From NCBI GenBank assembly GCA_054661495.1, contig BAAFSQ010000275.1, forward strand, positions 1 through 13,177: DNA of 13,177 nt. The letters run 5' to 3'. How positions within the stretch are numbered: position 1 is the stretch's first letter; every line of letters starts with the position of its first letter. Position numbers and translations under genes: made by a program. Shown in pieces: positions 2,542 through 13,177 of this stretch. The notes beneath the pieces were generated by a model. That model did not search any database and was not told where the DNA came from. It saw nothing but the letters and a program-made list of their open reading frames with translations. The DNA comes from Zygophlyctis sp. KS116 (Eukaryota > Fungi > Chytridiomycota).

Positions 2542-3670
2542 TTATTCCTCAGTGACACTTGATATTTCAAACCCTAAGCTTGTGATTAAATCTAAAATGA
2601 TTGAACGATCTACTTGTGAAAGGACTGTTAAAACACATGATCTATTTATCGGGTCTGAAATAGAGAATTCTCCAACTCCCATATCTTTTAGAGCATTTGA
2701 AATGGCAAATGTACAAGATTTGCAGCTTGTTCCCTACAAATTAGATTAAACCAAAAAATACGCTAATTTCTACTTCAAAGTTGGACATTGGGCCACATCC
2801 TCCCCCATAGCATGGCGATTTTCCTCTCAATCTAGAAAACCCTTTAAATGCTATAGTGAGCGCTCCAGCAACTCCAACAGCCTCTCCAGTTGCTTTGAAA
2901 GGATTCTTTTCAAATTCATTTTCCCATTCATTTAGAGCTTTTTTTGGGTGCCTCATCAGTCTTGGAGTTGAAGCAACACCTGCAATCAAATCCAATGATG
3001 CTGCTTTAACACCGTGATATTTGGGAAACATAAATTGTAATTCCATCGGTGCATTCTCTTGAGTAAAATCAGACGGATCTTGTGATAGAGGTATTGATTT
3101 CAAACAATTCTCATCACAATCTGAATCAAGAATATAAAACTGACTAGAGATTGCAGAAAATTTTCCTTCATGTCTCCATATTGACCATCCAGATATGTAT
3201 TTAAGATAGTATCTACCATTGGGAAGAGAAGGAACAGTCCATTTTAAATGCCCAAACCCCGCCCGAGGCAAAACATAAAACTTTGAGTAATTACTGTGAA
3301 GAATAACTTTGAATTCACTTTCTGATGCTATCTTGGCAACTCTATCAAAAGATGCATTTAAAATATATAAATCACTGGTTCTAAAATATGATCGTGAGCT
3401 AAGTCCAAAAGTTTCCATGTATAGATCTAACGATTCATTGACTTTGACAATTGAATTTTTCTCTGGTGTAGCAAATGTCATATTTCTAGTCCTAAATCCA
3501 TCAAAAAATGCAAGCATAAATGGAACAGAAGTTAACCCAGTCATCCATGATAAAATAGAATTTTGAACTGACAATCCACCCGACATTGTTGCACCAGCGA
3601 TAATTGGGCACAATGGGCAAATGCATCGACACAATGCTATAAAGTATGAGAATAAGATCCAGACTTTCAT
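2542..3670 (-). CDS. Cys-rich secretory or membrane protein with a C-terminal HMA domain, about 366 aa; complement(join(2542..2733,2762..3670))
   Basis: Signal-peptide-like start MKVWILFSYFIALCRC at ATG 3670. A 28-nt intron 2734-2761 (GTATTT...CTAATTTGTAG) extends the 2741..3784 ORF by 63 aa, giving FEVEIS-GTSCKSCTFAISNALKDMGV...IILDLITSLGFEI. This matches the HMA pattern (GxxCxxC, xAL, terminal xxLGF). Stop TAA at 2544-2542. Confidence 0.82.
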
Positions 3671-3716: not shown

Positions 3717-4105
3717 ATGGACAAAAATAATTCATTGTCTCCCTTTAGAGTTCCAGCCAAATCCTCCAAATTACCGACAGGCACAGGATATTCAAACTAT
3801 GACTGGCTTCAGAAATCATTTCCCCAAAAGGCCCCAATAAGAGTTTCAACGGCAGAATTGTCCAAACATAATCTAGAAGATGATGTATGGATCGCAATTC
3901 AAGGTAGAGTTTACGATATCACTCATTACATTCCATATCATCCAGGAGGCAAATATCAAATATTAAGGGGCAAAGGTATCGACGCAACAGAATTATTCTT
4001 CAAAGTTCACCCATGTAAGGATTAAGTTTTAATAAGTTAGGGGTAAATCCAGAAGCTCTTTTGGGTAAATGTTGGATTGGATTTCTTGTCCGAGATCAGT
4101 CTTAA
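3717..4105 (+). CDS. Cytochrome b5-like heme-binding protein of the Irc21 / Ncb5or-b5 / RLF type, 120 aa; join(3717..4014,4041..4105)
   Basis: Motifs GYSNYDW, ELSKHN..DDVWIAIQGRVYDITHYIPYHPGG and GIDATELF..VHPWVN..LL.KC.IG, with both heme His ligands. The conserved HPWVN is restored only by removing the 26-nt intron 4015-4040 (GTAAGG...TTAATAAGTTAG). Confidence 0.92.
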
Positions 4106-4148
4106 ATTGTAATAGCTTTAATAGAAATTTCTGATTTTTTTAATTCCG

Positions 4149-7000
4149 ATGTACAAAATAGACTATCCGCATATTGTTGTAACTACTGATTTGAATTCTT
4201 CGGATGGCCTGGTTATTGACAAGGAATCATCAAAGATTTTACTTTTAGGTAATTAGCATCAATTGACACGTAGAGTATCTTAGTTGGCGCGTACTAACAA
4301 TATAGGACACAGCTGGAAGTGGAGGAGATTATTCATCATGAATCAAATATATCTACAGTAATTGATAAACATAATTTGATAAATAATGTTATCAATGGTA
4401 AAAAATATTGATAATGATTAGGAAACTCAACCGCTCTTATTCAAGGGACAATCGGACATCCATTTGGACAATCCAATAAAATGTAGGTTTATGCGTGAAT
4501 AATTCTCAAAGAAATTCATTTGATTGTTGGATTGCAGAATTATTCCAAGAGCTGGAAAACGTTTCAGATCCACGAGTAACAGCTGGGTAATTCAATTTTT
4601 TGATTAATAACAGCTTATACGGGTTTACAGACAGCAAATGCATCGATATGATGAATGATCAGATTGTTCAGGGTATATGATTTAAAAATTGATTTTAAGT
4701 GGACTCTGCTATGCAGAAACTAAAAGTTGTACGGGATCCACAGCGCTTAATAAGCATAATCAAACAGGGAATAAACATTCCGTGGGCGGTCATAATACAG
4801 ATCGAAAGGCGTGAGCCAGTACGAACAGTTGGCACTCTTATTATGGTATGCACTCTATGATTTGAATTCAAAGTTGAATATCCATGATTTAGGATTTGTT
4901 AAAGATGCTCCCGAAAATTTATCTGCCGAATCTCTCAAGATGGTATTGAACCAATGTAGTCTGAAGACTAAAATGCCTCAAATTGGAGCCGGAGGGCCTA
5001 TATTACACTTATTTTCTGGTATTTTTTGGTTTTAATTTCAAGAAATAATCGGACAAAAATATTTTCTTATTTTATCTCTGGGGATTGATGTAAATTATTG
5101 TAGTTGATCTCTAGAAAACTGTCACGATTGAACAGACTTCTCTACTTTGTTTTTTGAATCAATTTTCAACTATTAAATGTTCTTTGGTATCCTGAATTTT
5201 AATCTTACACTATAGAACACCACATTCGTTGATCCGAGACTGGAATTTTTAGAAAGAAAGATTCATGCTCAGAACTTGGAGTTGGCAGAACTAAAGGTAT
5301 GCTAATAGTCCGGTTCTGATTAAATAATTAGATCATATTTGAAGCTGAAGCTAATAAATTAAAAGAAGAAATTGAAAATTTCAAGAATGAAGAATCGGAT
5401 AAAAGAGAACATCAAATAGCTATTTTACATGCTGAACAAGACGAAATGTTAGCCAAAGTTTCTTATGATTATCAAGAGGACTCCACGAGGGTATAATATT
5501 TTTTATTATTTAATTCAAGATGTTTATGAACAATCAATTGAACGTTTCAAACATAAAAATCACTCAGAATTGTATCAAACTAGAAAAATTAAATGAGCTG
5601 GAAATGCAACGACGGATCAGAGTTCAAATACGTAATTAATATGAGCTATTAATGTTTCATAGTCTCTCAATACCACTTGGCTCAAGGTTTATTAATGGCT
5701 TCTGAAAAGAAATGCATCTCAGTCGAAAAAAATAATTCAATTTTATCAGAGACTTATCAAAAAAATATCGATTCGAGTACAAAAGAATTGGGAGAAATTA
5801 GAATTAACCGTCAAGAAACCGAGGAAATGCTTAATTCGAAAATCAATATTTTAGAAGCCTTAATTTTTGAAAAAGGAGAACATATTGGCGAACTAACTAA
5901 TAAGATTGAAGAAATGAAGGCTAAAAATGATGGAAAATCTGAAAAATTGAAGAATACAGCCGATGAAATGAAATCATCTATTAAAGAGCTAAGTAAAGAA
6001 TTGGAATTGTCTAAAAGGCGTCAATCTGAAATTGAAGAGGAAAACATAAAGCTAATTCAAGAAATTGAATCTTTAAAATCAATTCATTCCATTAATTCTA
6101 ACTATTATTCATATTCTTCAGATTTGGGAGCTAAAAAAGATAATACTATAAAGCTGACCAAAAACAAATCTAGGCCACAGGTCGAACCAGTCAAGACACC
6201 GTTAGAAATTATGGAGGAGGGAGAGTCTGAAGGTCATATTGAACTGGACGCTATTAGTCAAGAATTCGAAAATACTCATGATAATTCTGTTTCAAATAAC
6301 CTAAGCAAATCAGACGAGACAGAGGAGCAAAAAAATCAAAAAGGTAATGCCACTATTTATTAAAAAATAGTCAAAGGCTCAAAAAAACAACGAAAACAAA
6401 AAAGTGAGAGTACGGCGGAACATATATATCCGTCGAAGGATCCATCGTCATCTGTAGAAGAAGTCATTGCATCAACTACAAAGACTAAGAAATCAAAAAA
6501 GAAGCAAAATCTGTTAAAAGATGACATCGAAGGAAATAACCAGCCTGCCTCCAAGTCCACTGTAGCCCCAGCAGTATCAGTGGATGGTTCAAAATCCAAA
6601 TCTTCAAAGGAAAAGCGAAAAGCCAAGGATAATAATTCAGATCCTGCACTTTCTTCCAAAGAAAATGACGATGCATCGATTAAAATTCCTCCAAAACCTG
6701 TGGAGGTAGTCAAGAAGCGTAAAATCGGCAATAAAAAACGGGAAAGAGAAGAAAAGGAGGTTTCTGATGTTGAGCTATCGCAGGTATTTTGGGTAATAGT
6801 TTCTAAAAAATTAGCAAGATGTACAGCATTCACAATCATTTCTGAGCAATTTTAGCATTTGGCCATTTACTGCTCAGGAAGACACAACACAGGAATCAGT
6901 TCCGGAAAATATAATGGCTATGCCTGAAGCAGTGATCCCAAAGCTCACTGAAGCAAAGGATAATCGTAGAACCATGCGATTATTAAGAGAATGTGTATAG
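4149..7000 (+). CDS. Kinesin-fold pseudo-motor protein with coiled coil and Lys/Ser-rich tail, about 809 aa; join(4149..4248,4274,4306..4397,4422..4482,4512..4586,4614..4672,4700..4845,4874..5018,5043..5089,5115..5186,5216..5296,5332..5490,5520..5631,5663..6343,6371..6783,6815..7000)
   Basis: Fifteen GT-AG introns of 24-35 nt join into one stop-free frame (2430 nt) that absorbs track ORFs 4811..5035, 5677..6363 and 6580..6855. The first about 275 aa follow kinesin element order: LINNVINGNSTALIQG, IAELFQEL..RVTAGLYGFTDSKCIDMM, VVRDPQRLISIIKQG..AVIIQIE..GTLIMLNI, NLSAESLKMVL, ILHLFSEIIG..LILSLGI, QTSLLCFLNQFSTIKC. E/K-rich heptads follow. The 3' end is uncertain: a possible extra intron 6995-7029 would extend it. 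Confidence 0.75.
4274..4274 (+). other. Candidate single-nucleotide exon (A) between introns 4249-4273 and 4275-4305
   Basis: Sequence reads ...TTGACACGTAG|A|GTATCTTAG...TACTAACAATATAG. The upstream exon ends in phase 1 and the downstream exon starts in phase 2, so 1 nt (or 1+3n) is required between them. Confidence 0.55.
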
Positions 7001-7524: not shown

Positions 7525-7949
7525 CTCGAGCCATTTATTTCAGCTCAGATCATGGAGCTTCATCATAAGAAGCATCATGCAGCTTATGTTGCTAATTTGA
7601 ATATTGCGTCTGAAAAGTTGGATTCTGAAATTGCAAAAAAGGACTTATAAGCAATCATTGGTCTTGAGCCGGCAATTAAGTTTAACGGTGGCGGTCATAT
7701 CAATCATACCTTTTTTGGAATTGCTTAACTCCCAGCAAAAGTCATGCTGCAGAGTTGTAAACCGGTAAGTAATTTGTTTTAATATTAGGAAATTTCAAGT
7801 CTGCGATTGAAAGAGATTTTGGATCTGTTGATGCGTTTAAAACTGCATTTTCTGCTGGAGTTCAAGGATCTGTATGGGGATTGTTTGGATACAATAAAAC
7901 TAGTCAAAAACTAGAAATTGCAACCACGCCCAATCAAGATCCATTATTA
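7525..7949 (+). pseudogene. SOD2: Mn superoxide dismutase (Fe/Mn-SOD family) pseudogene fragment
   Basis: Reads [26 protein letters not shown]...KFNGGGHINHT/FW...AIERDFGS...[12 protein letters not shown]...NQDPLL. Lesions: TAA at 7648 and 7758, a frameshift near 7711-7716 and a small deletion before GVQGS. It keeps a 24-nt intron at 7765-7788 and lacks the C-terminal DxWEHAYY metal-ligand motif. Confidence 0.9.
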
Positions 7950-8169
7950 CGTTTGGAACGCCACTTAAAGCCGCCAGCTTAGTATAGCACCTTATATAGG
8001 CTATCCCGTTGTCAAAACTCCTTTTGAGAGCCATTTATTCTATTATTTTAACCCTCTCTTCCCCACCAAAGTGTTTAGTTGAGCACTCACATGGATTGAA
8101 TCAACATAAAACTTATTGTATTGTAAATTTATTAGATTTTACTTAATAATTCAAAACTTCTGGCCTATT

Positions 8170-8621: not shown

Positions 8622-8665
8622 AAGTTCACTAGTTAATAACTAGTGAACTTATAACTAGTAGTTAT
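8622..8665. repeat. Two abutting perfect palindromes (14-bp arms 8622-8635/8637-8650; 7-bp arms 8651-8657/8659-8665)
   Basis: AAGTTCACTAGTTA-A-TAACTAGTGAACTT is followed directly by ATAACTA-G-TAGTTAT. Confidence 0.9.
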
Positions 8666-9545
8666 GTCGTCCTCTGGCAAATTTTTGTACTCTGTACTAT
8701 TGAACAGGATATCTTTAAATGCCGGGGGAATGCTTTTTAAATATTCGAATGCAGCCAACCATACGGAATTTCTTACGATTAGTTCTGGACAATGTTTTTT
8801 AAGGCTTCCTTTGTCAATGCCCTTGTGATAATTTTGAACTTTGTTTTTATCAACCAAGATATAGCGCAAAGTGTCAGGCAAGTCTTTTAAATTACTTGGT
8901 AGAGATCGAGCAATTTCATTCACATCCTGTTTCAGTGTGATAGAGTTTCCAGAGGATGCAAATGAACCCTTTTGTAATCTTTTCATTGATATGAATGCAC
9001 GAGCGGGAGATAATAGAATTCTTTCTGCCAGTGTAAGTTTTTTCAAACAATCAGGTTGATATGAACTTACAAATCCCATATTGTAAAGTGACATTTTTGG
9101 GATTTTTTTTGTATTAAGTGCATTTTGACACATATTACAGACTGTATATTCTTCCAAAACCCGATTCAATAGAACATGATCTATAATGGAGAGTTGGCTT
9201 GGCGATAGTTTGCTTTTTGTCGAATTCATTTCATTCGTAAACTTTACCATTCCACAAAGGTTACAAGCGCCTGCATACATATGATCTTCTTTATCCAAGT
9301 CGTCGTAAAAATTCTTGGCAATTATCCTGTAATGATCGATAGAGTGACAGATAGGTGGCGAATCACTTTTTCCTTTATATTTTCTGTCAAGTAAATCATT
9401 ATTGATGAAGTTTTCTGTTTCAATTAGACCTAGATTAACTACTTAATTATTTATTCATAATACTCACCATGATGTATATCTTTGAGTTCCTGATTTATGA
9501 GTGATTCCACTTTTTTATCTTCTCTGAATATTTGATGAGTTCCAT
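8633..9545 (-). mobile_element. Helitron-type RepHel N-terminal fragment (DUF6570-like), truncated before the Rep and helicase domains
   Basis: Motifs ACNLCG, VCNMCQNAL..KKIPKMSLYN, PDCLKKLTLAERILLSP, GNSITLKQD..IARSLP..L.DLP and LIVRNSVWLAAFEYLK..P.FKDI are typical of the domain upstream of Helitron Rep. The frame extends upstream of 9298 through a 38-nt intron (9430-9467, GTGAGT...TTAATCTAG). No HUH or Pif1 motifs are present. Confidence 0.78.
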
Positions 9546-12044: not shown

Positions 12045-12690
12045 TTAATATACTAACCCCTCAAGCGTATTTCGTTTATCAGTTCCAACCATCCCCTTGC
12101 AACCAAGAGTTCTAGGGTCAAGCAAATAGGCAAATCCCATAGATTCGGTGTGTAAGAAATTTGATAAAAATCGCCTACAAGATAACGAAGCCTGTATAGT
12201 TCTGAATTCCTTAACAAGTGCTCCACGACGTTTTATGAAGTTGGTAATATCAGCTGGCTCCCGAAGCGTCTTCTCGTATTCCTTTATTTCAAGAATGTCT
12301 TTTATCAGAAGGTATAAGACGTGAGCCCCAAAGCCATTAGCAAATATAATAGGATAATTAGATTCAATAAGTTTCCAAGCTGCTTGCATATTTGCAGCAT
12401 TGTCTGTAACAACCGATGATACTCTTTCCGGTCCAATTTCATCAACTATTTTTTTTAAATCTTCATAAATGCTTTTGCCTGTCTGAGATACTCCAGACGT
12501 ATCAATGGCCTTATCAAGAATAGGTTAAGTTAACCAAATGGTCATTCCTAATATTGCTCCAACCATCAGAAACGATTGACACCGTTTGAGCGTTTTGTAT
12601 TAAAGTGTTCATTTCATCATCCAATATTTTTGGTTGTTTTTTCTAAAAGTATAGTCCTTAACTTCTTAGAGGAAGGAGTAGCATTCTTTA
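12045..12690 (-). mobile_element. hAT-superfamily transposase remnant (DUF659 region), frameshifted and internally deleted
   Basis: Motifs PSSKKLRTILL, VSIVSDGWSNIRNDHLVN, AIDTSG..TG..I..L..IVDEIGPERVSSVVTDNAANMQAAW, GFGAHVLYLLIKDI (degenerate CxxH) and AYLLDPR. Frameshifts near 12630 and 12525; the TRW segment is missing. Confidence 0.88.
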
Positions 12691-12904
12691 GTCGAATTCC
12701 TATATGCATTCCGCCTTTGTGTAGGCCGAATCGGTGATCATGGTGATAATTACGTTGCAGGGTTAGGAATTAACGCTAGGCGCACAGAAACCATAAATAC
12801 TTTAGACTCTCTTATGCATTTACAAAAAGTCTTGCCAAGTCATATAAGAAAAGGTCTATTAAAGATTTAACAAAAAATAATACAAACACATTAGTTTTAT
12901 AACG

Positions 12905-13071
12905 TATACGTTGGGACGCAAGATTAACTCTTCACTGATCATAAGGCGCTCACACATTTACTGCATACAACTCATATTATTCCTAAGCTTAATCGTTGGA
13001 TTTTGATATTACTTTCTTACAGTATTGATCTCTATCATAAGCCAGGCGTGGACAACATAATGGCTGATTCT
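12905..13071 (+). mobile_element. Ty3/Gypsy LTR retrotransposon RNase H remnant
   Basis: YTLGRKI/LFTDHKALTHLL...PKLNRWILILLSYSIDLYHKPGVDNIMADS matches the TDH..L / RW / pG..N..AD signature. Frameshift near 12926; similarity ends at 13071. Confidence 0.85.
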
Positions 13072-13177
13072 TACGAAACCCCCGTAATTCGGGGAATCAT
13101 TTATTCAACAATTTCCATCCGGAACTCACATTAGTGTCATTCGACAAGTACAGGAAAATATGCAAAGGCAGACGCTG

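Follow-up and report, generated by a model that had tools for sequence, protein, structure and literature searches.

RESULTS

Gene content and exon–intron layout of the locus

The window, by which we mean the whole stretch of 13,177 nucleotides analysed here, carries on its forward strand a cytochrome b5-like gene (3717–4105; PF00173, E = 7.7e-19), followed by a second gene on the same strand, which begins with an ATG at position 4149 and is the host gene of the feature under study. Exon 1 (4149–4248) comprises 100 nt; its frame is open throughout, and its last base, G4248, is the first base of a split codon. It is followed by intron A (4249–4273, 25 nt, GT..AG, phase 1), the single nucleotide A4274 and intron B (4275–4305, 31 nt, GT..AG, phase 2). 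Exon 3 (4306–4397) takes up the split codon at its third base, and its first codon start is at 4307. Joining G4248, A4274 and G4306 yields GAG, with A4274 as the middle base of a glutamate codon divided among three exons. The rest of the host gene (4398–7000) contains at least 13 further introns of 24–35 nt at positions common to its relatives, and the exons between them are in frame. Removal of 4249–4305 in one piece shifts the frame, and a stop is met after 18 further codons. The original prediction had proposed these exon and intron boundaries, the loss of frame with a single 57-nt intron and its restoration by the composite glutamate codon, and our check of sequence and frame bore out all of these points.

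When we listed all one- and two-intron solutions for the site, the in-frame options were the one-nucleotide exon, a 17-nt exon, a 9-nt exon, a 71-nt intron (4249–4319) as well as several models that use position 4212 as donor. At A4274, a single base lies between an upstream AG and a downstream GT, each of which belongs to a complete intron, and this base is needed for the frame of a conserved protein. The same layout (GTA..WAG-N/GT) was found at 1 of 423 predicted exon ends in the genome. Thus, the layout is beyond chance, and the frame requires A4274 here.

The host protein consists of a conserved N-terminal domain, a coiled coil and a low-complexity tail, and its exons are well conserved among four lineages. 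Eleven introns of the gene could be fixed by orthologues; they measure 24–35 nt and all are of the GTA..AG type. The reading frame had initially been described as kinesin-like, but this label found no statistical support. The locus was not among the 53 matches of the kinesin motor profile (PF00225) in its own genome, Pfam and Atlas searches gave no match, and exon-wise HMM and HH comparisons, which are a weak test for exons this short, gave no signal. The kinesin motifs GxxxxGKT (P-loop), SSRSH and DLAGSE were absent from every exon translation in all lineages. A resemblance to a kinesin motor is visible by eye only, in the spacing of motifs, and the protein may carry a degenerate motor-homology domain in front of its coiled coil. 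Database searches with the spliced model were run exon by exon, and joined segments served for checks of frame and stops.

Splicing style of the genome

The genome belongs to an uncultured chytrid: its cytosolic Hsp70 shares 88–92% identity with the proteins of Batrachochytrium, Spizellomyces and Rhizophlyctis, and a quick tree places it inside the chytrids, together with environmental sequences. From the assembly (12.7 Mb in 1175 contigs), we used 270 kb that lie outside the window to train a gene model whose intron-length prior was flat; it predicted 503 introns. According to these predictions, 445 of the 503 introns (88%) are 22–35 nt long, 94% start with GTA, and TRAY branch-like motifs peak 6–8 nt from the 3' end. 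Internal exons shorter than 31 nt were rare (5 of 392 predicted, the shortest having 4 nt); none of the 392 was shorter than 4 nt, and no exon of 0–5 nt was found hidden in the 23 long predicted introns inspected. The genome encodes UPF1 as well as a U2 snRNA with the canonical branch-pairing sequence GTAGTA. At the site itself, the trained model chose the one-nucleotide exon, and all rivals scored 6.5–21 log units worse. Elsewhere (L014, L016 and C3 12084–17189), the model predicts internal exons of 11, 9 and 4 nt between short introns; two of the three genes concerned are kinesin genes.

Comparison with orthologous loci

Orthologous contigs were found through the upstream cytochrome b5 gene, which is syntenic in all lineages, and they showed the same two-gene order. 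Three near-conspecific haplotypes from other metagenome samples (L002/L003, L010/L011 and L055) had an identical double-intron layout; with this layout common to four haplotypes, an assembly artefact was ruled out. Three further lineages (L004, L005/L006 and L007/L008) are distant, their synonymous sites being near saturation relative to the window. In each of them, the first exon has exactly 107 nt, ends with GGT NNA GA and is followed by one phase-2 intron of 25–30 nt at the site of intron B. Intron B is common to all lineages in position and phase (25–31 nt), and intron A is absent from the three distant ones.

In the window, 126 nt lead to the same donor, and the 19 extra bases lie between GGT and GA and include an in-frame TAG. 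Removal of 4249–4273 is the only 3n+1 removal with normal splice signals. It uses the GT of the old glycine codon and the AG from the old NNA-G, and gives a protein that is two residues shorter than those of the relatives. What it leaves as an exon is A4274, which corresponds to the A in the conserved GA that precedes the ancestral donor. This comparison, which the original prediction had called for, favours the one-nucleotide exon: a 107-nt exon with a phase-2 intron in the relatives versus 19 additional nucleotides in the window. A cytochrome b5 tree, weak as it is, places the window lineage within a set of lineages that lack intron A, which is in line with a gain.

Exon 1 contains no indels, and its protein is 45–58% identical to those of the three distant lineages. 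Its pN of 0.26–0.32 compares with a pS of 0.69–0.80, as in the later exons. Exon 3 is open and conserved, with Q-L-x-V-E-E kept through synonymous changes. Between the window and L002, the later exons gave a pS of 0.09 and a pN of 0.01, and these values indicate that the host gene is under purifying selection within the lineage. A sister lineage with an intermediate state was not found, and a JGI scan gave only a locus that was already known. Searches with the long exon matched only within the near-conspecific cluster. No spliced protein was found in the databases, and an exon-1 profile search matched only unspliced exon-1 fragments.

The neighbourhood of the gene showed several further features. 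The gap between the cytochrome b5 stop and the host gene is only about 20–45 nt, and the heptamer AATTCCG directly 5' of the ATG (window 4142–4151) is invariant in all four lineages despite the near-saturated synonymous sites. An intronless ORF of 309 amino acids without Pfam match (2741–3670, reverse strand) lies in head-to-head orientation to the cytochrome b5 gene; in L005/L006, its position is occupied by an ABC transporter. An Acyltransferase-3 gene with one 26-nt intron (1494–1519) occupies 836–2076; it is also present upstream in L010, with hAT-like sequence in its place in L002. On the other side of the host gene lie the remnant of an Fe/Mn superoxide dismutase (7555–7980) with an in-frame stop and a frameshift, and mobile-element pieces (8633–9298, 12045–12389, 12901–13101) with matches to DUF6570, weak matches to hAT-like DUF659 and weak RT RNase H-like matches.

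Splice signals of introns A and B

Measured against the 445 short introns, intron A has its donor at the 79th, its acceptor at the 6th and their sum at the 24th percentile. A branch-like TGAC with A4266 lies 7 nt before its end, and the intron is unchanged across the four haplotypes. Intron B contains a perfect TACTAAC (4292–4298), and its branch A lies 8 nt from the intron end. Both distances fall within the genome mode of 6–8 nt, and the claim that the motif of intron B is perfect and normally spaced therefore held. TACTAAC occurs in only 2 of the 445 short introns and is absent from the orthologues of intron B, which suggests that the motif was strengthened after intron A had been gained. 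Strain changes within intron B were seen at 4278 and 4282. The GC contents of the two introns (0.36 and 0.39) are high for this genome (0.21 ± 0.06). After removal of intron B, the first AG downstream of A4266 is still 4272–4273, and the next two AGs are out of frame. The strongest of the possible pairings combines the donor of intron A with the acceptor of intron B (71st percentile), and some skipping of A4274 by 57-nt removal is therefore likely.

Intron B also carries a CGCG core (4288–4291, forward strand), an MCB-like DNA element by its sequence, which is found in all four lineages and in 1 of 445 other short introns. The first ancestral intron of the relatives contains ACGCGT (L004 814–843, L005 4290–4314, L007 728–752), which is the MCB consensus (PMC4862756). 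Genes of the KilA-N/APSES type are present in the genome; a search of the genome for E2F found none. The core is possibly a cell-cycle DNA element, and it may protect intron B from loss.

RNA contigs

Contigs from three freshwater metatranscriptomes were used as RNA source. Four introns of the host gene (about 4587–4613, 5297–5331, 5491–5519 and 6784–6814) are missing from RNA contigs, and the gene is expressed and spliced downstream of 4485. In these metatranscriptomes, no RNA contig covered 3987–4485, and the junction 4248/4306 lies outside the coverage. One RNA contig (4486–4765) is partly spliced; it lacks intron 4587–4613 and retains both neighbouring introns. The introns of the host gene leave independently and not strictly in 5' to 3' order.

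Alternative splice models

Among the alternatives, the joining of exon 1 to position 4320 comes closest in score. It would proceed either by a 71-nt intron (4249–4319) or by removal of intron B followed by a 40-nt intron that ends at the AAG at 4317–4319, and would give a protein with no micro-exon and five residues fewer. The frame is kept, AAG acceptors are common (97 of 445 short introns), and introns of at least 60 nt do occur (33 of 503 predicted introns). However, the acceptor stands at the 0th percentile, the model falls behind the one-nucleotide exon by 6.5 (flat prior) to 13 log units, and splicing would have to pass over two AG sites that lie closer and have well-spaced branch motifs. 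Moreover, the stretch 4307–4318, which would be lost, keeps its glutamine and leucine via synonymous codon changes, and all orthologous introns of the gene measure 23–35 nt. We regard this reading as improbable. About equally improbable is a 5' end that is not productively spliced, in which the 57-nt skip dominates or translation starts later and A4274 is an insertion by-product. The strong pairing of donor A with acceptor B would suit such a scenario, as would the gap in RNA coverage at the site. On the other hand, exons 1 and 3 show the same degree of constraint as the later exons and contain neither indels nor stops, the layout has been kept in four haplotypes, and the first downstream in-frame methionine follows only some 130 residues into the protein.

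Still less probable is a route through a non-canonical splice site or through nested, stwintron-like splicing to another in-frame product. Removal of intron B does create an extra AG across A4274/G4306, but the [A2,3]-type route that uses it removes 58 nt and then meets a stop, and the only TG within intron A would define a 17-nt intron that is out of frame. The least probable alternative, and a very unlikely one, is the competing model of the original prediction, a 17-nt exon (4274–4290) with a 22-nt intron, together with its variants, the same exon with a 34-nt intron and a 9-nt exon with a GTT donor. The earlier remarks that the 17-nt exon keeps the frame in the haplotype of the window and that its branch motif is badly spaced (15 nt from the end) were both correct. 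In L002/L003 and L055, however, the change T4278A creates an in-frame TAA in the 17-nt and the 9-nt exon, which refutes the 17-nt exon for these two haplotypes; the same change is harmless in a donor. In addition, the 17-nt exon abandons a donor that is conserved in all lineages, and its acceptor is at the 0th percentile. All rivals other than the 71-nt intron scored 9–21 log units below the one-nucleotide exon.

Three further candidates were rejected. Read-through or recoding of the TAG at 4254–4256 would retain intron A and leave 126 nt in the wrong phase, a GC donor at 4256 leads to a stop or to the wrong phase, and the models with a donor at 4212 delete conserved residues and are 12–21 log units worse.

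DISCUSSION

Orthologues, strain variation and the genome-trained splice model all backed the one-nucleotide exon, which the original prediction had favoured. Thus, a chytrid gene very probably needs the single-base exon A4274, and we consider it highly likely that A4274 is a constitutive one-base exon whose flanking introns leave in succession. As has been argued for APC11 and plant micro-exons (PMC4674806, PMC8831610), a one-base exon does not allow exon definition, and its two introns cannot be spliced simultaneously. Introns A and B would each be recognised by intron definition and removed in turn, since one base cannot seat the 3' machinery of intron A and the 5' machinery of intron B together. 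Sequential, intron-defined splicing at A4274 is a sound inference from this analysis. Either order of removal would be workable, but intron B may well leave first because its branch motif is unusually perfect. A transcript from which all 57 nt have been skipped runs into an early stop and would be expected to enter nonsense-mediated decay, for which UPF1 is encoded.

The orthologue comparison indicates that the one-base exon has arisen recently and that a new intron was gained one base before an old one. For the origin of intron A, its own sequence offers a clue. The stretch 4252–4274 resembles a segment that runs from the 3' end of the ancestral intron across some 18 nt of the exon behind it, and this segment is its probable duplicated source. 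When intron A was compared with the whole orthologous loci, this segment (the end of intron B and the initial 18 nt of the following exon) was the best local match both in L005 (rank 1 of 584 windows) and in L007 (1 of 376 windows). Scores as good were reached by 0 of 445 (L005) and 1 of 445 (L007) real introns and by 2 of 5000 and 9 of 5000 shuffles, respectively; these figures come from a test that was set up after the likeness had been noticed, L005 and L007 are related, and AT richness helps the match. No match to the start of the next exon was found in L004 or in exon 3 of the window itself. If the frame of exon 1 is carried on into intron A, the translation is G-N-stop-H-Q-L-T, compared with G-x-D/E-N-Q-L-A/Q in the relatives, and the Val-Glu codons GTA-GA of the copy provide a TAG one base before the old donor.

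Taken at face value, this likeness makes it probable that intron A stems from a local duplication of the start of the next exon. The 19 extra nt between GGT (the glycine codon) and NNA-GA (the exon end) would have been gained, most probably from such a duplicate. The glycine codon's GT would then have come to serve as donor, and the AG lying one base ahead of the old donor as acceptor, at a cost of two residues. The simplest route would be a duplication of the intron and 18 nt of exon at an AGA microhomology, after which the first intron copy may have been lost or collapsed, the acceptor would have moved to the last AG, and the mini-exon would have shrunk to one base.

One-base exons are already known; what is new here are the tiny flanking introns, the restriction to a single lineage and the traceable origin. 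As in Arabidopsis APC11 and plant VPS55 (PMC4674806, PMC8831610), one coding base sits between two spliceosomal introns and was missed by annotation, and intron definition with successive removal has been proposed for these plant genes as well. The plant exons, however, are proven by RNA and old (conserved across land plants), whereas A4274 is deduced from sequence, is restricted to a single lineage and lies between introns of only 25 and 31 nt. The one-nucleotide exon of Fusarium CYP621A (PMC12940212) is likewise fungal, likewise solves a phase-1/phase-2 mismatch by the middle base of a codon, and was also revealed by orthologue comparison. It is confirmed by reads and present in more than 20 orthologues, and its intervening region spans ~139 nt, compared with the 57-nt unit around A4274. 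Its authors propose a cryptic exon adopted inside an old intron, whereas A4274 appears to be the end of an old exon severed by a new upstream intron.

The case also resembles intron gain by tandem duplication or intronisation (PMC2891723, PMC4974935) in that a duplicate from within the gene and pre-existing GT and AG dinucleotides would have been used. In the classic tandem-duplication model, an AG/GT proto-splice site is copied far from other introns, near positions being mutually exclusive, and gain beside an existing intron is usually taken as not tolerated (PMC2891723). Here, by contrast, the old and the new intron coexist with a single base between them, and the order of the copy departs from a simple tandem. 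Two consecutive intron-defined splicing steps over a short distance also characterise fungal stwintrons (PMC7138796). In a stwintron, however, a splice element of one intron is split by the other and nothing remains between them, whereas here both introns are complete, one base is retained and the [A2,3] route is out of frame; we therefore do not assign the locus to this class.

A more comprehensive reading would describe a young one-base exon that arose when a duplicated piece of the next exon made a 25-nt intron beside a 31-nt one, in a tiny-intron genome where splicing is purely intron-defined, exon length is irrelevant and several exons of 1–4 nt exist. We put this forward tentatively, at slightly less than even chances. 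If true, no intron-base-intron unit more compact than this one (57 nt) would have been described, and A4274 would be the first one-nucleotide exon with an identified source. In the literature searched, few nuclear one-base exons are described (APC11, VPS55, CYP621A); all of them are old, and their origins are guesswork. Relatives with and without the extra intron would here provide a concrete route of origin, the gain of an intron next to an existing one. The 57-nt cassette may serve as a minimal substrate for studying the handover of a single base between two spliceosomes. It is also a warning that annotation of chytrid genomes with tiny introns will break such genes.
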